A DNA stretch of 64,000 nucleotides from Prasinococcaceae sp. CCMP 1430 (GCA_013416795.1 RQSC01001332.1:1-64000), one strand, 5' to 3'. Positions 2,763-60,417 are shown, counted from the first letter of the stretch. Numbers and translations are program-made. Notes: generated by a model from the sequence alone, not told the origin.

Positions 2763-5606
2763 GTGCGCCCGTCGCTGGCGCGGCAGTGGCCGCTGGCCTT
2801 CGACCCGCTCGCGCCGCCGCCGCCGCCGCAGCAGCAGCAGCCGGATGCGAGTGCCGGCGACGAAGGCGGCGAGGGCCGTCGGGCGGCCAAGCGCGCGCGC
2901 AAGGAGGGGCTTCGCAAGAAGAAAGAGCTTCGGGCGGCCGAGAGAGTTTTGCGGCGCACAGACGGCGCGCGGGTGGCGAGCTTCCCTCGCACGTTCGCCG
3001 GCGGGACCGACCGATTCTACGCGGACGTGCTGGGCCTGGACTACGCGATCGCGCGCGCGCGCGCGCGGCGGAAGCAGTCGCTCCCGCCGGCGCCAGGGAC
3101 GGCCCCCCTGGTGGGAGGTAGCACGAGGTACTCGTGCGTGCAGCAGTGGGCCGAGGCCTGCCACGCCCTCGCGATGGCCGAAGCGCGCGCGGAGGTGAGC
3201 AGAGCGGTCCGCGAGGGAGTGGGGATTGTGAGGAAGTGTGAGCTCGTGTCGGTCGATCGGTCAAGTGCGAAGAGGAGGGAAGGGAAGGGAAGTGGTGGTG
3301 GTGGGGGGATGGACGTGGAGTTGGCTACGATCGTGCTGAGGCTGTGTGAGCGTAGCGCTAAATTGATGGAGACGACGGAGTGGCGGCCGGGGAGCCTGTG
3401 CCTGCTTTCGGCGTGCGACGATGTAAGCAAGGGGGAGGAGGAGGGGGAGGGGGAGGAGGGGGAGAAGGAGAAGGGCGGGGATGGGGGAAGGGGGAGCGAC
3501 GAGGGGAAGAGGCGAGGAAGGGATGATGAGAGGGACGGTGAGGAGTTTTGTGCGTCGATGGGGGGCTGTGGCCGGTGGTGGCTGGCGTCACCGCTCGTCG
3601 CGCAGCCGGCGAAGAACGGGGAGCTGGCGCTGTCGCTGAGGGTGAGCGCGCAGGCCGCGGGGGCGTTGGATGCCGCAGGCTGCCAGTTCGTGGCCGTCTC
3701 GAGCCTCGGCAGCGCGCGCCTGCTCGCGCACCAGCGCATGGCGGCCGCGGCGCACGCGTGCGCTTCCAGGACGGGCGGGATGATCGACGCGAAGCTGGCG
3801 TTCGCTCTGGCCGGGCTGAAGCGACCCGAGCATAGGAGGTTTGATGACGACGACAAATTCCGGGATTGTGATTCTTCTCTTTTTGGGGGGGGGGAGGTCG
3901 ATGCGGAAGGAAGTTTTTGGGGGGGTGGAGTTGATGGCGAGGATGCCTGTTTAGAGGGGGAGGAGGGCATGATTGAGGACCCCCACGGCGCCGCGCGCGC
4001 GGCCGCGGTGAGCGCGCTCAACGCGTCGCAGCTGCTGGCGCTGCGTCGGTTCGAGCGTTTGTTCGACGGATGGGAGATTGGTCGTGGTTGGGACTGCGAT
4101 GATGTGCCGAAGAAGACATGTGACGACGCGCCCCTCCAGCTCGTGCACGGGCCGCCCGGCTGCGGCAAGACCGTGCTGCTCTCCGCGGCGCTCTTCGCGG
4201 CTCCGCGCGGCGCGTCGATCCTGTGTGCCGCTCCGTCCAACGCGGCGGTGCTCTCCGCCTTCGGCGCGTACAGGCGGTATGCGGGAAGGGGGGGGGTGGA
4301 TGAATGTGACGCTGTGCTGGTGGGCGACGCGGAGGCGCTCGGCGCGAGGATGGGGGGGGTGGATGATGTGTCGCAGGCCTATGCGGGCTTTGTGGCGCAC
4401 CACGCGGCAGGTATTGTGAAGGGGTGTTGCGCGGAGTTGATGGGGTTGGTAAAGGGGGGTTGGGGGGAAGGAGGAGGGGGGTCGGTGGGGGATGGTGTGG
4501 CGTTGGTTGTTGAGAGGATGAGGGAGGATCTGCGTTGTTCTTCGAGGTTGGGCCCCTCGACGCTGCGGAGGTGCGAGGAGGAGGTGGAGGTCGTGGTTGA
4601 GATGATGGCTGGTGGGAAAACGGGGTGTGTGAAGGAGGTGTGCAAAAGTTTGGAGGGGCTCGCCGCGCAGCTGCGCGCGGAGAGCGAGCAGGTGGCGCTC
4701 GAGGCGGTGAGCGCGGCGCGCGTGGTCTTCTGCACGCTCGCCTCCAGCGGGCAGAAGGTCGTGCGCGGAGTCGCGCCGTTCGACGCGCTGGTCGTGGACG
4801 AGGCCGCCCAGGCGATCGAGGCGGAGATTCTGCTGGGATGCGCCGCGAGCGGCGCGCGGCGCTGCGTGCTGGTGGGCGACCCGCGGCAGCTCCCCGCCAT
4901 TGTGGTAAGTGAGGAGGCGGTGAGGATGGGATTGGAGGGCTCGATCATGGCGAGGCTGATGGATGGGTGCGGCGTGGAAGCGAGCGTGCTGGAGATACAG
5001 CATAGGATGCACCCACAAATCTCGAGGCTGCCGTGTAGAATTTTTTATGGGGGGCGGGTGAGGGACGCGGATTTCGTGGAGGGGAGGAGCGTGCCGTGGG
5101 GTGGGGATGGAGAAGATGGCGTGGGGAGACGTTTTCTTTTTCAAAGAAAGAGGCTGTGGGTGGTGGACGTGGCCTCCGGCGCGGAGCGCAGGGCGCTTTC
5201 GGGCAGTGTGTGTAATGCGAGGGAGGCGACGCTGGCACGATGGCTGGTGGAGGGGTTGAAGAGGGAGAAAGAGATGGAGGGTGCGAGCATCGCCGTGATA
5301 ACGCCGTACGCGGCGCAGGCCGCGCTGATCGGCCACGGCGCGCGCACCGTCGACGGCTGGCAGGGCGGCGAGGCGGACGTCGTGGTGGTGTCGCTGACGA
5401 GGGCGAGCGGGGGGAAAGGGGCGGGGTTTGCGGCGGATGAGAGAAGGCTCAACGTGGCGCTCACGCGCGCGCGCCATGGAATGGTGGTCCTGTGCCACGC
5501 GCGGACGATGAGGAGGGCTGGGGGCGCGCTCAAGGAGGTGGTGGAGGATGCGAGGAGGAGGGGGTTGCTGGTGAGCGAGGAGGAGTTGCGGAGGAGCTTT
5601 TCTTGA
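2763..5606 (+). CDS. Superfamily-1 helicase of the UPF1/SEN1/DNA2 group; 5' end may lie in the N gap
   Basis: GPPGCGKT (Walker A), APSNAAV, VVDEAAQ, VGDPRQL, QHRMHPQI, VITPYAAQ, TVDGWQGGE, DERRLNVALTRAR. TGTAA at 5675-5679. Confidence 0.9.
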   Translation: MRPSLARQWPLAFDPLAPPPPPQQQQPDASAGDEGGEGRRAAKRARKEGLRKKKELRAAERVLRRTDGARVASFPRTFAGGTDRFYADVLGLDYAIARARARRKQSLPPAPGTAPLVGGSTRYSCVQQWAEACHALAMAEARAEVSRAVREGVGIVRKCELVSVDRSSAKRREGKGSGGGGGMDVELATIVLRLCERSAKLMETTEWRPGSLCLLSACDDVSKGEEEGEGEEGEKEKGGDGGRGSDEGKRRGRDDERDGEEFCASMGGCGRWWLASPLVAQPAKNGELALSLRVSAQAAGALDAAGCQFVAVSSLGSARLLAHQRMAAAAHACASRTGGMIDAKLAFALAGLKRPEHRRFDDDDKFRDCDSSLFGGGEVDAEGSFWGGGVDGEDACLEGEEGMIEDPHGAARAAAVSALNASQLLALRRFERLFDGWEIGRGWDCDDVPKKTCDDAPLQLVHGPPGCGKTVLLSAALFAAPRGASILCAAPSNAAVLSAFGAYRRYAGRGGVDECDAVLVGDAEALGARMGGVDDVSQAYAGFVAHHAAGIVKGCCAELMGLVKGGWGEGGGGSVGDGVALVVERMREDLRCSSRLGPSTLRRCEEEVEVVVEMMAGGKTGCVKEVCKSLEGLAAQLRAESEQVALEAVSAARVVFCTLASSGQKVVRGVAPFDALVVDEAAQAIEAEILLGCAASGARRCVLVGDPRQLPAIVVSEEAVRMGLEGSIMARLMDGCGVEASVLEIQHRMHPQISRLPCRIFYGGRVRDADFVEGRSVPWGGDGEDGVGRRFLFQRKRLWVVDVASGAERRALSGSVCNAREATLARWLVEGLKREKEMEGASIAVITPYAAQAALIGHGARTVDGWQGGEADVVVVSLTRASGGKGAGFAADERRLNVALTRARHGMVVLCHARTMRRAGGALKEVVEDARRRGLLVSEEELRRSFS

Positions 5607-22528: not shown

Positions 22529-23424
22529 TCACAGCGACACTCGGCCCTCCATGACGTCCAACGCATAGATCTCGAACCTCTCCAGGTCAGCCTTGATCAC
22601 AGACTCAAGCACGGGCTTCACGAGCGGCTCCACGGCGGAGAGGCCGTCGGGCACCTTCGGTGCGAGCGCAGCGGTCGCCCGAGTCGAGCGACGCCGGTCA
22701 GCACGCAGGTTTGGCTGGCCGCCCCGGGGGCGCGCGGTGCGCCCACGCGCTCGGCGTCGCGCGGGGCGCCGGGCGCGGGGACGAAGCAGGTCGGTGGGTG
22801 GCCGATCGACCCGCACGCGCCGCTGCGCCGCGCGTGCGTACCTCATACGAGATGCTCATCTTGAGCACGCAGCCTTCACCGGCATCGTCCTCGTAGAAGC
22901 GCACGGCACCGCGGTTGGGGTAACCATCGATCGCCTGCGAGGCGCAAAGCGCCGCGAGGCCACGCCAAGGCGCGTCAGAGCGCGCTCAACGCGCACGTCG
23001 CGCGAGGCGCGCACCCTTCGCGCGGTCCTTGCGGCTCACTCACCTTCCAGTGGATCTTCTGCCCGGGCACGGCGGCGAGGTTCCTCGCCGTCCAGCTGTA
23101 CTGCAAACGCTGGCCCAGCTGGTCGAGCACTGCACGCATCGGGGTCGAGTCTGTCGAGAGCGTCCACTTGGAGTTGCGGTCGTCCGCCTCATCGACGACG
23201 ACGCTCGTGACCCACGGCATCCACTGGGGGATGAGCTCGCGGCGCGACCACAGGTCCCACGCGACGGCGAGCGGCACGCGCGTGCACCGCACGCTCACCT
23301 CCGACTCCAGCCACGTGGCTGCGTGCACGGTCGTGCGCCGCGCCAACGGACGTGGTCGCCGGTGCAACGGTGCGCTCCGAGCCACGCGCGCCGGGCCGCG
23401 CGCTACAGCGCTCGCAGCCACCAT
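22529..23424 (-). CDS. START/SRPBCC (polyketide cyclase/dehydrase-like) protein, probably plastid-targeted; 3 exons
   Basis: Transit-like N-terminus; AWDLWS...IPQWMPWVTSV...SKWTL...YSWTARNL...QKIHWK | AIDGYPNRGAVRF...SISYE | VPDGL...ADLERF. Splice sites and GCTGAC branch points are present. Confidence 0.85.
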
Positions 23425-53842: not shown

Positions 53843-56600
53843 TTACGACGTGGTAAAAAAGCCCGCCATGCACAGCACGCCGTCCATGAGCTCACCCACG
53901 CGCCCCCACGCGCTCGCCGTCGCTCCGTGCAGCTCGCCGCACGCCTCGCGCAGGTCGGCGCGGCTCCCCAACACCTCGGCGTGCGTGGCCAGTAGGCGCG
54001 CGAGCAGCGCCTGCACAAGCTCGAAGTTGCCGCCGCGCTCCGTCTCGCGGCGCAGCATCGCCAGCACGGTGCCGAGCGCCTCGCGCGTGGCGACGTCGTC
54101 GCCCACCACCTCCAGCTCGGCGATGGCCGCGTCGAGCTCCCCCGGCGAGAGCGCCCGCAGCTCCTCCAGCGCCTCGCCGCCGTCCGCCTCGTGTGCGCGC
54201 GCGAGCGCCGCCAGCCGCAGCGCGCCCGCGCCCTCGACGCCCGGCGCGACCCTCCGCACGCGCTTGTTGGCCGGCGCCGGGTCAGTATCGTCCTCGTCCT
54301 CCATATCGCCGTCGCCGTTCTGGTCCGCCCCCCCCACACCAAAGAAGCTCACCGCCGCGTCCACCGCTCCCGCCGCGTTGCCGCTGGTGGCCTTTTCCAG
54401 GTCGCCAAGCCCCGGCAGGAAAAAGGGCGCGCTCTCCGGCTTGGACACGGCCTCGGCGGGCTTGGAGCGCGCGCGGATCTCGTCGAGGCGCACGAGCCCC
54501 TGCCACTTCGCCTTGGCGAGCATGCCGAGCGTGACGGCGCCGCCCTCCAGCGGCTCGGGCCCGGCGCCTTCGTTGGCGTTCGCCCCCCCGAGCTCGGCCT
54601 CGGCGGCGTCGAGGATGGCGCGGCCGTCCAGGGCGTCCTCGTCGTCGGCGCCGTCCACCTCCACGCCGTCGCTGTCACTCCCAGGGTCGCCGGCCAGCCC
54701 GAGCGCCTCGTCGTCGGAGTCGAGCGCCACGCCGTCCGTGCGCGCCCACCCGGACTCGCCCGCGGCGTCGTCGCCCCCCTCCTCGCCGTCGTCCTCGCCC
54801 GCGCCCACCTCGGGCATGGCCACGCGCCGCCGCATCCTCGCGCTCGCCCCCTCGCCGCCGCCGTACACCTCCGAGTTCGCCCACAGGTAGACGGCGCGCT
54901 GCTCCGAGTGGGCGGTGGCCATCGCCGCGCCGTTGGGCGAGAGCGCCACGGCGACGGCGGGGCTCGCCAGCCGCATGACGTCCCTGCACGACGAGGCCTG
55001 CACGTCCCACACGCGCACGGTGGCGTCCATGGCGGCGCTCACCACCAGCCGCGCGTCGGCGGAGAAGGCCAGCGCCGTGGGCCTGTCAACGTGGCCGCCG
55101 AAGCGCCGCACCACGCGCGGCGCGTGCGGGGCGGCGTCCACCACGCGCACGTCCAGGTCGGCGCACGCCACCGCCAGCAGCCGCGCCGACGCGTGCCACG
55201 CCGTGCACACGGGCGCCGCGGGCAGCGGCAGCAGCGCGCGCAGCCGTCGCGATCGGAAGGCCCACACCTTCACCTCCCCCCCCACGCCGGCGCCGCCGGC
55301 CTCGCCCGCGCACACCGCCACCGACGCCGCCACGCGGTTGGCGGCGCACGCGTGCACGCCGACCACCGCGCCGGCGTGCGCCGCGTTGTCCGTCCCCAGC
55401 CGCGCGTCGGCGTACGAGCCGCGGTGCGCGCCGCTCTGCACGTTGAAGCGCTCCACGCGCCCGCCCTCGGTGCCCAGCAGCGCGTAGTTGCCGCACGCGC
55501 TCATGCACACGCAGCTCACGGGCCGCAGCCTGAGTTTTTGGAGAAAGAAGGTGCGTGTGTGTCAGTGCAGCAGTCTTCGTCAGCATCACAGACGCACACC
55601 GACATGTTCCTCAGCGCGACATTCGCGCGCACTCGCGCGCATTCGCGCACCTCTTGCCCGGGGGCGTGAGCACGTGCTCGCCCACCGCCAGCTTGTCCAG
55701 CCGCCAGGTGTACGCCGACGTGGCCCCCTTGTGCGCGGTGACGCAGCTCGCCCAGTCGCGCTCGCGCGCGGCGCACGCGGCGAGCGCGCGCACGGGCGGC
55801 AGGCGCAGCTCGGCCTCGGAGACGCCCAGCTTGCGCGCGCGCGCCGTGACGCCGCCCTGCGACACCTCGCGCGACTGGTGGTCCTGGAAGGTGGAGAGCG
55901 CGCGCAGCGTGCGGTCGTCGCCAGCCGAGAGCAGCCAGCGCCCCTCGATGCCGTGGTACGCCAGGTGGCGCGGCGGCGCGGCGTGGCCGCAGCGCGAGCG
56001 CAGCAGGCGCGCCGCGGCGCCGTGCGCGGCGTCGGCCTGCGTGCTCCCGAAGGCCCACTCGCGCAGCGCGTTGTCGCTCCCCGCCGACAGCAGCATGCAC
56101 TCGGCGGCGGCGCCCGACGCGGCGCGCAGCGCGTGCAGCGCCGTCACGGCGCCGTCGTGCGCCTCCTTGATGACTCNGTCGTGCAGCGCCACGCGCCCGT
56201 CGGCGAGCCCCGCGGCCACCACGTCGAGCGCGGGCGCCGCCACGAGCGCGCGCACGCCCGCGCCGCCGAAGGCGTCGAAGGTGTACAGCTTTCGCCGCGT
56301 GGCGACGTTCCACAGCTGCATGGCGCCGTCGGCGCCGCCCACCAGCACCTTGTTCAGGTACGTGGGCGGGTGGCACAGCGCCGTCGGGACCATGCCGCCC
56401 AGGTCGATGACGAACTCCGGCTCGATTTCGGTCGGGGGCGACTTGCGCGGTGCGCCGGCGCCGTCGCCCGGCGCGGGCGCGCGCGGCACCGCCCACGCGA
56501 GCAGGCTTCCGTCCCTCGCCGCGCCGAGCAGCATGTCCGCATCCACTCCTCGACCTTCATCGAGGCGATGCCAGCGCCGGCTGCGAGGGCGCCTGCGGTG
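53843..56600 (-). CDS. UTP21: WD40 SSU-processome subunit UTP21/WDR36; intron 55650-55530; 5' part and an internal segment (n 56177) missing
   Basis: ALCHPPTYLNKVLVG, LWNVATRRKLYTF, APALDVVAAGLADG, LLSAGSDNALREWAF, RSRCGHAAPP, CGNYALLG, FGGHVDRPTALAFSADARLVVSAAMD, KPESAPFFLP, NFELVQA. Confidence 0.92.
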
Positions 56601-57608
56601 AGCAGCGCGCCCGAGGGGCTCCCAAGTGGCGCGCTGAGCACATCCGCCGCCCCGCCGCCGCCCGCTGCGCGCGCCGCCGCGCCACCCNATACGTACATTT
56701 GAAGGCACACGCACACACATGCATTTCAAACTCATCGACATCTGCATTCACACTGGCCAAGATAGAAACATTTAATTTGGATTGACCAAGATCTGGTGAA
56801 GGTCATAATGAATGTCCTTTGTGTTTGTAATGGAGTTTGATATGGGGTTTGTACGCGCATTAGCATTAGGGCACGCCGCGCGAGGCGGGCCTGGGGCCCC
56901 GCCAGGCGCGGGCTCGGCAGGGGAGGAGGGTGTGGGTGTGTATGCCGGCGTACGGCACACTGCGCGCGGCGAGCAGGCGAGCGGGCAGGCGGGCGGCGTC
57001 GCGCCGCTCGCCGGCCGCGTCCTTCGCCTTCCCTTGCCTCGCTGGCCGCTCGTTCCTGCGACCGCGGGCGCGGGCGAGAGGTGCGCGCGCGAGAGAGGGG
57101 AGCGGCGGCTGCGGCGGCTGCGCTCGCGCCGGGGGTCTGCGTGCGCTGCCGCCGTGCGTGCGCCCTCCTCTGCCTCGCGGCTGCCGCCGCCGCAGCGACG
57201 CGCGGGGGGCTCGCGTGCGCGCTGAGCTTGGCGCCCTCGCGCCGTGGCGCCCACGCGCCGTCTTTCCTTTTCATTTTGCGACCTCTCCGAGACGTGATGT
57301 TGCGTTGCTGCAAGCAATGCTGGCACCAGACTCGAGTCGCGGGCACCAACAACAACAACACGCCCGCGGCGGTGACGATCAACTTTGGCTGACTGATCCC
57401 GGACGTCGACGAACTCGACGCGCCCCGCGCGCGGGCCGCCGCGCGCGACGCGTGAAATGAGCGCGCGTGGCCGCACCGCCGCGCGTGCGATGCAGCCACT
57501 CCCCGGCGAGCCCGGCGCTGACTCGCCGCGCTCACCACGCGCACGCGCGCGCGCACGCACACGCGCGCTTCTTCCCCGTCGCACATCACGTTGCCAGCCA
57601 GCGCAGCC

Positions 57609-57845
57609 ATGGGCTGCGCGCGCGACGAGCTCGAGGGCACCTCCACGGTGTCCGAGCTCCGCAAGCACGTCGACGACTTCCGCAAGGCGTCGATGGAAGA
57701 GCACACCAAGTGACTCAAGGACACGCTGGGCTCGCTCTTCGGCGCGCTCGGCGGCGGCTCGGCCGCGACGTCCGACAAATCGGCGACCGCTGCCGCTGGC
57801 ACCGTGGCCCTGGACCTGCGCGCCAACGCACCGCCCGGGGCGTAG
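57609..57845 (+). CDS. Candidate small selenoprotein, 78 aa with an in-frame TGA (codon 35, 57711-57713) read as Sec
   Basis: GCCATGG start. Translation: MGCARDELEGTSTVSELRKHVDDFRKASMEEHTK-TGA-LKDTLGSLFGALGGGSAATSDKSATAAAGTVALDLRANAPPGA-TAG. Coding-type codon usage continues after the TGA, and there is a SECIS-like hairpin downstream. A short upstream exon (57457-57484) is possible. Confidence 0.7.
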
Positions 57846-57974
57846 GAAGCGCGGGCGCCGACGGCGCTCCTGCAGCACATGCGCACGTATTCGTCCGCAG
57901 GGCCACGCACGCACAAAGACGCAGGCGCACGCGCGAACGCGCCCGCATCCGCCGACCGCCAAGCAGCACGACGC

Positions 57975-58033
57975 ATGACGGGAGCTCTTCGCACAGAGCC
58001 GGCTCGCATCGAGCCGGCGGCGGGCCCCCCGAG
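57975..58033 (+). promoter_or_regulatory. Candidate SECIS element (type-II-like, non-canonical apical bulge)
   Basis: ATGAC core 5' strand (57975-57979) and CGAG 3' strand (58030-58033). A 13-position helix 57980-57992/58017-58029 has 11 pairs including 2 G-U. Unpaired ACAGAG, then a mini-stem CGGCTCG/CGAGCCG with a CAT loop. Confidence 0.6.
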
Positions 58034-59311
58034 CGACCGCCGGCCGACTCCTATCGCCACACCGCGAGAGTCGCCGGCGGGTGTGCCCGACGCCGAGGCA
58101 CGGCGGCGCCCCTTCGCTCCAAGGCATGCGTGCGCGTCGTGGGAGGAGAAATGAGCGCGTGCGCCATTCAGGGCTGTGCGCCCTCTCCGTGGGAAGGTGC
58201 GGACGCGAGCTCGCGCGCGTGCGCGTCCCCAACGCGTTGGGCATCGTGCGGGCGGGCGGGGAAGGGTGTGCTCGGGGTGCTGCAGCACACGCCGGCGCAG
58301 GATGGGACTTGTGCGTGCGTGTGCGCGTGTGTGAGGCCGCTCTCGCGCTGCTCGCGCGCGCGCGCAAGCCCGTTGTCACGCCGGTCGACCTTCTTCCCAC
58401 GGTCGTCTCGGCCCTCAAACTTTGTTATTTGGGCGAGAGCGAAGGGGGGCGCTAACTAAGCTTCGGTGCGGTTGGGGCCGCGGCAGGTGCCGCGCGCCCC
58501 GGGCCGTCCGCACACGTTGCGTGCCAATGTGTCCACACTCTTGACTCCCTCTTCTTCCTTGGGAGGCGCGCCCCAGCCGTGTGCGTGCGAGCGTTTGCTT
58601 CCGCCCTTGTCGCTGGCCGTCGGCTGACCGCACCGCCTCGATCGCGCGCGCGCAGGGCGCGCAGCCACCACCGCCGGCGCGAGCTCCTCTCCGCCTCGCG
58701 CCCACCACTCGAAGTTGTAACGTTTTGTACCCTACTACTACGACGTGCGCGCGTCCCTCTGCGCGCTGTGTGTTGTTGTGTCTTCTTCTCTGGGTGTGTG
58801 TCAGCGTTTGTGTGGTCGCAGGGCACAATCGCAGCCGTACCGTTGTGCTGACTGGAGTCCCAGGTCTGCCGCTTTGGAGGGCATCATGGAGGCGCGGGCG
58901 TGCCACATCGCGCACGCGCGCGATCGAGGGGCGGTCTGGCGCGCGCGCGCGCGTGCGTGCGGGCTGGCGGGGCGCTGCGGCCGGGCAGCACGCACGCCAA
59001 GATCGCGGTCGCGCGTGGAAGTTGCTGGCGAACGCCTGTTGGTGCCACATTATGCGCGCCACGCACGCGCGGAGGAGTGTCTCGAGGGTGGGGTAGGGGG
59101 GCTCTCTTCGCCGAGCCGCGCGCTGGCGTGCTGCTCGCAGGCACGCGAGCGCTCGTGCTGCGCGCAGCGCTCGTGCGCGAGGACGGACACACGTGTGTGC
59201 ACACACGCGCCCCCCAGAGCATCCCTGTCTCTCTCGCGCGCGTGCGCAAGCGAGCCCCCCCGCGCGCGCGCCGAGCTTGACGTGTGGTCTTAGAATAGGG
59301 TCGATCCTCAC

Positions 59312-59373: not shown

Positions 59374-60417
59374 TTAGAACATCTCCTCCTCCTGGTGGGT
59401 CATGATGGTGCAGTCCGACGAGGGGTACGCCACGCAGGTGAGCACGAAGCCCTCGCCCATCTGGTCGTCGTCAAGGAACGACTGGTCCGACTGGTCGATC
59501 TCGCCGGCGGTGACCTTGCCCGCGCACGACGAGCAGGCGCCCGCGCGGCACGAGTAGGGGAGGTCGATGCCCTCCTCCTCGGCCTTGTCGAGGATGTACA
59601 TGTCCTCGGGGCACTCGATGGTCTGTTAAGCGTGTGCAGAAGAGGAAGGCCGGCCGTCAGCGCGCGCTCGCACAGAGGCGGAGAGGTGCGCGCAAGACGT
59701 GGCGCTCGCGCCTGGGGACTCGACGCGAGGGGTGCCTGCGCCGGGGGGCGCCGACAGCGGCGCGCGGCGCGAGCGAGGCGCCGCGCGGCGGCGGAGCGGC
59801 GGCGGCCGCCGGCGAGGGTTTCTCCCGCGGGGTTTTGCGCGCGCGCGCGCGCGGCCCCGATCGGTTCGGAGTGCAGGGCACCTCCCCACCCAACGCGATC
59901 GCGATCGCGATCGAGGGCCTCGCGAGCACCGCGGCGCCCTCCGCGAGGACCCTGATCCCCCCCGAGACCGCGCGCGATCGCCGCCCGCGCGCGCGCCTGC
60001 GCGCGCGCCCCCGCGCCCGAGATCCCGCCGCCCAAGCGCATCACCGAGGCGGCGACGAGCTCCGCCCTAGGCATGGCCCACGACGCGAAACCCATCACCC
60101 CACTCCCCACGCGCGGCGCGTCGCACGCCATCCCCGACATCTCCCCTCCCCCCTTACGAGCGCACACAAGCACCCCGCTCCCCCCACAGCCACCAGCGGC
60201 CGCTCGCGCGGGCGCTCCCCGCGCTCGCCGCGCTCCCCGCCGCGCTCTCCGCGCCCCTCACCTGCTCGCCGTCGGGCGTCACCAGCGTCACGGTGTACAT
60301 GGCCGTCACCGAGCGCGCGTTCACCGGCTTGAGGCCGAAGCGCGCCGAGGCGCGCGGCGCGCGGAGCGCCACGGGGCGGGCGGCGAGCGACATCGAGGAG
60401 AGCTGGGCGGCGGCCAT
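59374..60417 (-). CDS. PETF: Plastid [2Fe-2S] ferredoxin; intron 60261-59623
   Basis: Transit peptide, [13 protein letters not shown]|[37 protein letters not shown]...[13 protein letters not shown] at 59316-59312. Confidence 0.97.

Follow-up and report, generated by a model that had tools for sequence, protein, structure and literature searches.

A probable selenoprotein gene with a SECIS-like 3′ hairpin in a prasinodermophyte-like marine picoalga

On the plus strand of the stretch of DNA analysed here (64,000 nucleotides, hereafter the window), an ATG at position 57609 opens a short reading frame that meets a TGA after 34 codons and then continues. Does translation end at this TGA, or is the UGA read through, and if so, is it read as selenocysteine (Sec)? 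The features on which the answer depends are as follows; L003 and L004 are contigs of a diverged lineage, introduced below.

57609–57845, plus strand: coding sequence, intronless, 78 codons including the proposed Sec (codon bias, alignment to L003, dN/dS)
57711–57713, plus strand: in-frame TGA, proposed Sec codon, codon 35 in the context AAG-TGA-CTC, the same codon in five assemblies
57843–57845, plus strand: true stop codon TAG, beyond which near-identical strains diverge by 14% and the sequence is unalignable to L003
57970–58037, plus strand: SECIS-like type II hairpin (ATGA...GA scan, constrained folds, covariance model, cross-lineage pairing)
58365–58451, plus strand: colinear conserved block 3′ of the hairpin, 67% identical to L003 1478–1567 and L004 1185–1274

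The ATG lies in the context gcagccATGg, and 43 further codons separate the TGA from the TAG. The initial annotation had described this frame from ATG to TAG, and its coordinates were borne out exactly. It had also held that the ORF track missed the gene, and the mechanical ORF list indeed contains only a 40-aa piece up to the TGA, beneath spurious minus-strand ORFs of more than 500 codons. The window is approximately 70% GC and contains runs of N. Its real genes have GC3 values of 0.84–0.97, those nearest the frame 0.91–0.97, with GC2 well under GC3, and spurious ORFs are flat at about 0.7–0.75. GC1/2/3 values before the TGA are 0.62/0.41/0.97, indistinguishable from those of the neighbouring ferredoxin exon (0.57/0.41/0.97), and after the TGA they are 0.72/0.67/0.91; the claim that the same codon bias continues past the TGA thus agrees with GC3 values of 0.97 and 0.91 on its two sides. 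Seven neighbouring genes served to train a codon log-likelihood model, under which they themselves score 0.36–0.88 bits per codon. The part of the frame preceding the TGA scored 0.77 bits per codon and the part following it 0.53, with 0.92 for the first 12 codons of the latter. This signal fades at the TAG, and none of the other five frames rises appreciably above zero (−1.40 to +0.15).

TGA is absent within neighbouring genes over hundreds of codons, and is therefore not a general sense codon here. The stops of the six neighbouring ORFs checked were TAA in three, TAG in two and TGA in one. An intron with its donor GT overlapping the TGA (CAA/GTGACT) and its acceptor at the TAG was ruled out, as the resulting frame is without codon bias and the orthologue retains an uninterrupted frame. 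The sole tRNA within the 64-kb window is a tRNA-Leu. Both flanking genes are on the minus strand: a UTP21/WDR36-like WD40 gene at 53843–56747, split near 55520–55610 by an N run or an intron, and an exon of a plant-type [2Fe-2S] ferredoxin at 59374–59601. The space between them suffices for a small plus-strand gene.

Five independent assemblies were compared. Lineage A comprises the window together with L001 and L002, marine metagenome contigs approximately 97% identical to it; the diverged lineage B comprises L003, a 4.7 kb contig, and L004, a Tara scaffold. L001 and L002 carry P0001, the single match obtained in a word-indexed protein search with the read-through sequence (X at the TGA). P0002 (34 aa, 88% identical), recovered when the 34-aa N-terminal piece was searched exhaustively by phmmer, is encoded on L003 and L004. 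The TGA is present at codon 35 in all five assemblies. As these derive from different samples, a base-calling or assembly error is ruled out; the initial annotation had allowed that the TGA might be a misread TGC or TGT, and neither codon occurs at this position in any of the five.

The window and L003 coding sequences are 74% identical (26% of positions differ), and the lineage B frame in L003 has 90 codons. The ORF is the sole strongly alignable stretch between the two sequences (E = 3e-46). The alignment begins 8 nt 5′ of the ATG and runs without gaps through the conserved core; a gapped GC-rich tail extends about 27 nt beyond the window TAG, and nothing aligns further. The coding sequence diverges by 3.4% between the window and L001, with five synonymous and three non-synonymous changes; the corresponding values are 10.5% for the 195 nt that precede it and 14% for the first 100 nt past the TAG. 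Divergence from L001 then falls to 2.3% in the 130 nt that hold the hairpin, so that within lineage A the coding sequence and the hairpin block are conserved islands amid UTR at 10.5–14% divergence. The first 32 nt of the coding sequence are identical in the window (57609–57640) and L003 (595–626), including about ten synonymous sites, which hints at nucleotide-level constraint near the start codon. The gene neighbouring the L003 frame is a different one, a cupin and triose-phosphate-isomerase fusion gene on the minus strand (2829–4208), and synteny is therefore not kept.

The 15 residues that follow the TGA are L-K-D-T-L-G-S-L-F-G-A-L-G-G-G in the window and L-K-N-T-L-G-S-L-F-G-A-L-G-G-G in L003, 14 of the 15 being kept. 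Five of these codons have changed, four of them silently, and one of the changes is from TCG to AGC. This switch of codon family within a kept residue is explicable only by selection for serine. If the same stretch is read in the two alternative frames, 4–5 of 14 residues change. After the TGA, 7 of the 11 substitutions between the window and L003 are at third positions. The Gly/Ala/Ser linker differs in length by exactly one codon, after which the motif V-x-L-D-L-R-A realigns in frame. Nei-Gojobori dN/dS for the window and L003 is 0.31 before the TGA and 0.24–0.35 after it. The initial annotation had looked to dN/dS downstream of the TGA and to homologues aligning beyond it: dN/dS between the two lineages is about 0.3 on both sides, and L003 aligns in frame with a TGA in the same column.

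The serine codon switch also abolishes the only hairpin that the window forms just 3′ of the UGA. Conservation just past the UGA therefore acts on the protein and not on RNA structure. A Sec-redefinition hairpin immediately after the UGA was rejected, the window copy not being kept in L003. Positions 57609–57845 on the plus strand are a genuine, unannotated protein-coding gene. Judged from these patterns of substitution, purifying selection on the protein evidently continues beyond the UGA, and the UGA is evidently translated through.

In the 3′ flank, an ATGA is located at 57975, exactly 130 nt after the TAG, with a partner GA at 58031–58032. From its 5′ side, the window hairpin has a 3-bp helix 1 followed by the AUGA and an N.N position. 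A 7-bp helix is then separated by a CUU bulge from 3 bp, and one further base pair follows a 1-nt bulge; beyond these come an unpaired AGA, a mini-stem of 9 bp closed by a CAU loop and, on the 3′ side, the GA. Helix 2 is 11–12 bp long across both lineages, and the hairpin lies 262–620 nt from the UGA across lineages. A scan of both strands of the window (128 kb) gave five ATGA...GA elements with 10 or more helix-2 pairs. Folded by itself, the window copy has an MFE structure other than this hairpin, no better than those of shuffles (z = −0.6); support for the hairpin is therefore comparative, not thermodynamic. L003 and L004 have an ATGA...GA element 400–450 nt after their own TAG. The MFE fold of this element in L003 has a textbook SECIS outline, with helix 1, an AUGA/GA internal loop, a 10+1 bp helix 2, an unpaired AGA, a mini-stem and a GAAA apical loop, and its MFE z-score is unremarkable. 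The hairpin is the best ATGA...GA element in the 3′ flanks of both lineages, and the UTR surrounding it is unalignable between them.

A covariance model (R1) was built from the window and L001 only, with the proposed structure. R1 detected the L003 and L004 elements end to end (25.6 bits, E = 3e-4), the best non-self match in 143 kb. In the R1-guided alignment, 92.5% of cells are standard pairs, compared with 37–50% when the partners are slid, and there are five double-sided pair changes, three of them in helix 2 and the other two in the mini-stem, compared with 0–1 in the slid controls; this alignment is fitted to the model and spans two lineages with one deep split. It replaced a plain MAFFT and RNAalifold alignment, which had mis-registered the two lineages. 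Two arm substitutions, A to G and G to C, distinguish the window and L001 copies; through a one-base register shift they leave the hairpin in place and improve it. The covariation evidence is good but not overwhelming, and points to a hairpin conserved with compensatory changes. The AUGA/GA core placed 130 nt past the TAG in the initial annotation was thus found there, and is kept in lineage B.

No SECIS family was matched in Rfam searches of the whole window at the gathering threshold or of 2-kb and 150-nt slices at E ≤ 10, and Rfam SECIS gave no match to the L003 hairpin on a 150-nt slice at E ≤ 10. The element deviates from the canonical form in having an unpaired AGA (C-AGA-G) in both lineages where canonical SECIS has AA(R); the apical loop happens to be GAAA in L003 and is CAU in the window. 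In the consensus for the SECIS core, the 5′ arm reads UGAN and the 3′ arm KGAW (PMC3753652). The 5′ core, AUGAC, fits UGAN. At the 3′ core, the window and L001 have CGAG, and L003 and L004 have UGAG, so that the W of KGAW is lacking in both lineages and the K is present in lineage B only. Helix 2 of the window copy requires a 3-nt bulge (CUU) and an A.C mismatch. SECISearch3 misses some prasinophyte selenoprotein genes (PMC6627142), which makes a lineage-specific flavour of SECIS plausible. A second ATGA...GA candidate at 58151–58208 was rejected, being weaker, with 8 pairs and no L003 counterpart. A crude SECIS scan also gave ATGA...GA hairpins elsewhere in the window, at 22806–22846 (minus strand) and 18213–18267 (plus strand), with 11–13 helix-2 pairs.

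Between the stop codon and the hairpin, L003 contains a perfect 52-nt tandem duplication (909–1013, 2.0 copies), present as a single copy in L004. Its length is not a multiple of 3 and it breaks any frame, and the stretch from stop to hairpin is therefore non-coding UTR. The duplication is a recent strain-level polymorphism. The conserved block 3′ of the hairpin keeps its strand and order in L003 and L004, the UTRs being otherwise unalignable, and has the core CAAGCCCGTTGTCACGC ... GGCCCTCA ... TTGTT. It may be the 3′-end processing region of the same transcript or another UTR element, and its membership of the gene is uncertain. Transcript contigs were sought by exact look-ups of the ORFs likely to be called over the locus, which returned no record.

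A further block, at 57250–57413 on the plus strand, precedes the ATG by 200–360 nt. It shares 98.8% identity with L001 and L002, and the next 195 nt diverge by 10.5%. It contains box C/D-like motifs, TGATGT ... TGACGA ... CTGACTGA, at 57294–57395, and a T-rich motif, TCTTTCCTTTTCATTTTGCGA, that recurs 25–45 nt upstream of the ATG in L003. Rfam gave nothing credible on this block, which could be a promoter, a 5′ UTR element or a small RNA.

The conserved core of the protein, with U at the UGA, is M-G-C-A-R-D-E-L-E-G-T-S-T...L-R-K-H-V-D-D-F-R..E-E-H-T-x-U-L-K-x-T-L-G-S-L-F-G-A-L-G-G-G, followed by the variable Gly/Ala/Ser linker and the V-x-L-D-L-R-A motif. Within this, the blocks M-G-C-A-R-D-E-L-E-G-T-S-T, L-R-K-H-V-D-D-F-R, E-E-H-T, U-L-K, T-L-G-S-L-F-G-A-L-G-G-G and L-D-L-R-A are invariant across the lineages. 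The proposed Sec is flanked as E-E-H-T-K-U-L-K-D in the window and H-T-A-U-L-K-N in L003, and the sole Cys is residue 3. The helical hydrophobic moment is 0.44–0.54 over residues 10–30, and one continuous helix would align Val14, Leu17, Val21, Phe24, Ser28, His32, Sec35 and Thr39 on one face. No segment is sufficiently hydrophobic to span a membrane, the maximum 18-residue mean hydrophobicity being 0.32.

With the read-through sequence as query (X at the TGA), neither Pfam nor the PDB yielded a match, even at E ≤ 10. This agrees with the initial annotation, in which the protein was not recognised among the known selenoprotein families (GPx, TrxR, MsrA, the Sel families and others). When the 34-aa N-terminal query was run by phmmer against 1.84 billion representatives, only the algal orthologue cluster and two repeat artefacts were returned. 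A word-indexed search with the full read-through, at lengths of 43–136 aa, gave P0001 only, and one with the 40-aa ORF gave no candidates. Scans of JGI metagenomes and IMG/VR yielded pattern matches and no confirmed relative. P0003 and P0004 were rejected as homologues: their significance comes from summed tandem repeats of about 24 bits each, and the similarity does not reach the Sec column, which in P0003 is occupied by Ala. P0004 belongs to the ankyrin-repeat proteins. P0003, a metagenomic protein of 677 aa, is made up of some ten tandem repeats of 52 residues, after which comes a C-terminal part rich in Cys. Each of its repeats resembles residues 5–28 in the N-terminal helix of the candidate (R-x-x-L-E...L-[KR]-[KR]-x-V-D-D-x-[KR]-K-A-S, 12 of 25 identical). 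This likeness was judged to be a repeat-inflated chance match, although the recurrence of the motif is curious.

Four other readings of the locus were weighed. That there is no gene, but a chance ORF in 70% GC DNA or a TGA created by an assembly error, is effectively refuted. The long spurious minus-strand ORFs that cross the region and the unremarkable MFE z-scores are what such a reading would lead one to expect. The similarity to L003, ungapped through the core from 8 nt before the ATG at E = 3e-46, is not, nor are a dN/dS of about 0.3, a TGA shared by five assemblies from different samples, and minus-strand frames that score about zero or below in the codon model. Alternatively, the TGA might be a real stop that ends a 34-residue micropeptide, the downstream conservation reflecting an RNA-level function of the proximal 3′ UTR. 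Metagenome gene callers terminate the ORF at the TGA in both P0001 and P0002, and the strongest conservation (the first 32 nt, residues 1–13) precedes it. Against this, the third-position bias, the serine codon-family switch, the one-codon indel and the motif that realigns 30 codons on all follow the frame of the ATG, GC3 remains at 0.91 up to the TAG, the hairpin that the window forms after the UGA is lost in L003, and divergence rises only past the TAG. We regard a micropeptide as very unlikely.

If the UGA is translated, it might still be read other than as Sec, by a near-cognate tRNA or by programmed read-through, giving products of 34 and 78 aa beside an unrelated conserved structure in the 3′ UTR. 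The hairpin fails every Rfam SECIS model and is without the AA motif, the UGA is followed by C, a leaky stop context, and no Cys homologue marks the position as one requiring a thiol or selenol. Such read-through would nevertheless leave unexplained an AUGA/GA core, a helix-2 length and a purine internal loop in the exact SECIS layout in both lineages. The hairpin is 262–620 nt from the UGA, beyond the reach of known read-through stimulators, and there is no conserved structure directly 3′ of the UGA. Retention of UGA across 26% nucleotide divergence would be needless if a sense codon sufficed, and the genome, reportedly that of Prasinoderma coloniale (69.8% GC, in keeping with the green-alga premise of the initial annotation), is rich in selenoproteins, with a large selenoproteome (PMC7455551). 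Read-through without Sec is therefore considered unlikely. The remaining reading accepts Sec and places the protein in a broader helical family whose land-plant members would have Cys. It stems from the initial annotation, which likened the core to a land-plant protein motif of the form RRHIDEF..ASMDEHKTC..., and plant relatives are conceivable for an organism that is reportedly an early-diverging green alga. No such protein was found by phmmer (34-aa query, limited reach), by the word-indexed search (43–136 aa), in Pfam at E ≤ 10 or in the PDB. A land-plant Cys homologue is accordingly unlikely, the short 34-aa query limiting the sensitivity of this comparison, and membership of a wider family of this kind is very unlikely.

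It is thus probable that the UGA at codon 35 is decoded as selenocysteine, directed by the type-II-like SECIS at 57970–58037, in a genuine gene of 78 residues. In the proposed mechanism, codon 35 of the plus-strand mRNA from 57609–57845 would be read as selenocysteine. Decoding would be directed by the hairpin in the 3′ UTR, with its AUGA/GA kink-turn core, helix 2 of 11–12 bp and AGA, on which SBP2 and eEFSec would presumably act to insert the amino acid.

As to function, we offer the tentative suggestion that a selenol on the face of an amphipathic helix forms a single redox-active or metal-binding site. A long amphipathic helix (approximately residues 10–47) would place Sec35 on the same face as His32, Ser28, Phe24 and Val21. 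Resolution of the selenol might then fall to Cys3, which is invariant, or to another copy of the helix; alternatively, the selenol might bind a soft metal. The role of Cys3 as a redox partner is pure conjecture; Cys3 is conserved, but together with the entire N-terminus. The protein begins with an invariant Met-Gly-Cys, which may signify a lipid anchor, through acylation of Gly2-Cys3. Asp6 is unfavourable for this: N-myristoyltransferase disfavours Asp at position 6, where the PROSITE pattern prefers a small residue.

The candidate probably represents a lineage-restricted selenoprotein family, its observed range being this alga and a single diverged marine relative. On balance we favour, with rather less assurance than the decoding itself, the view that it is an undescribed eukaryotic selenoprotein family, so far of prasinodermophyte-like marine picoalgae, with no Cys relatives and no thioredoxin fold, in which Sec occupies a central position in an amphipathic helix, a single turn beyond a conserved His, and the SECIS has AGA in place of AA. 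If this is true, a family without Cys relatives and with an AGA-type SECIS would have been missed by surveys based on profiles and SECIS models.

The mechanism is the known eukaryotic system of Sec recoding. The protein family and the AGA-type SECIS appear to be undescribed in the literature and databases searched; an earlier label of "hypothetical selenoprotein" is possible. To our knowledge, nearly all known eukaryotic selenoproteins are thioredoxin-fold proteins or otherwise recognisable enzymes with Cys homologues. A helical mini-protein without a Cys form, accompanied by a SECIS without AA, would imply that selenoproteomes are under-counted by profile and SECIS-model methods, and that the apical motif requirements of SECIS are looser in early-diverging green algae than models assume. 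With an ORF of 78 codons and an element of 68 nt, the locus would also provide a compact natural test case for SECIS recognition. Algal selenoproteome surveys rely on known-family profiles or canonical SECIS models (PMC6627142, PMC7539508), and surveys of this clade would miss the candidate because known-family profiles were used (PMC6627142, PMC7455551, PMC7539508).

Compared with canonical genes with a type II SECIS (Rfam SECIS_1 RF00031; PMC3753652), the locus has in common an in-frame UGA with a stem-loop downstream, here at 262–620 nt, a core of tandem sheared pairs formed by the 5′ AUGA and 3′ GA, a helix 2 of 11–12 bp, and a purine internal loop on the 5′ side followed by a mini-stem and apical loop. 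It differs in having AGA and not AA(A/G), a 3′ core of CGAG or UGAG and not KGAW, and no covariance-model match; the window copy differs further in its 9-bp mini-stem with a 3-nt loop and in the CUU bulge in helix 2. Like selenoproteins K and S, the candidate is small, has a single Sec without a CxxU or UxxC partner motif, and contains a Gly/Ala/Ser-rich low-complexity segment. In those proteins, however, Sec is the penultimate or antepenultimate residue and there is an N-terminal transmembrane helix, whereas in the candidate Sec would be residue 35 of 78 in a predicted amphipathic helix, with no membrane span and no Pfam match.

Algal selenoproteomes are dominated by thioredoxin-fold selenoproteins (PMC7539508, PMC6627142). 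With this group (SelW/H/T/M, Sep15, GPx, PDI-like and Prx-like proteins) the candidate would share the recoding mechanism and, reportedly, the genome; it is without CxxU, UxxC or U-G-H-C motifs, a beta-alpha-beta signature or a profile match. Novel lineage-restricted selenoprotein families are also known from algae, such as SymSEP, PDI_e and AhpC_b (PMC7539508). Their domains are thioredoxin-like or AhpC, and Cys homologues exist for most of them, whereas the candidate has neither; it resembles them in its narrow distribution, in its occurrence in marine microalgae and in having been found by comparative sequence analysis.
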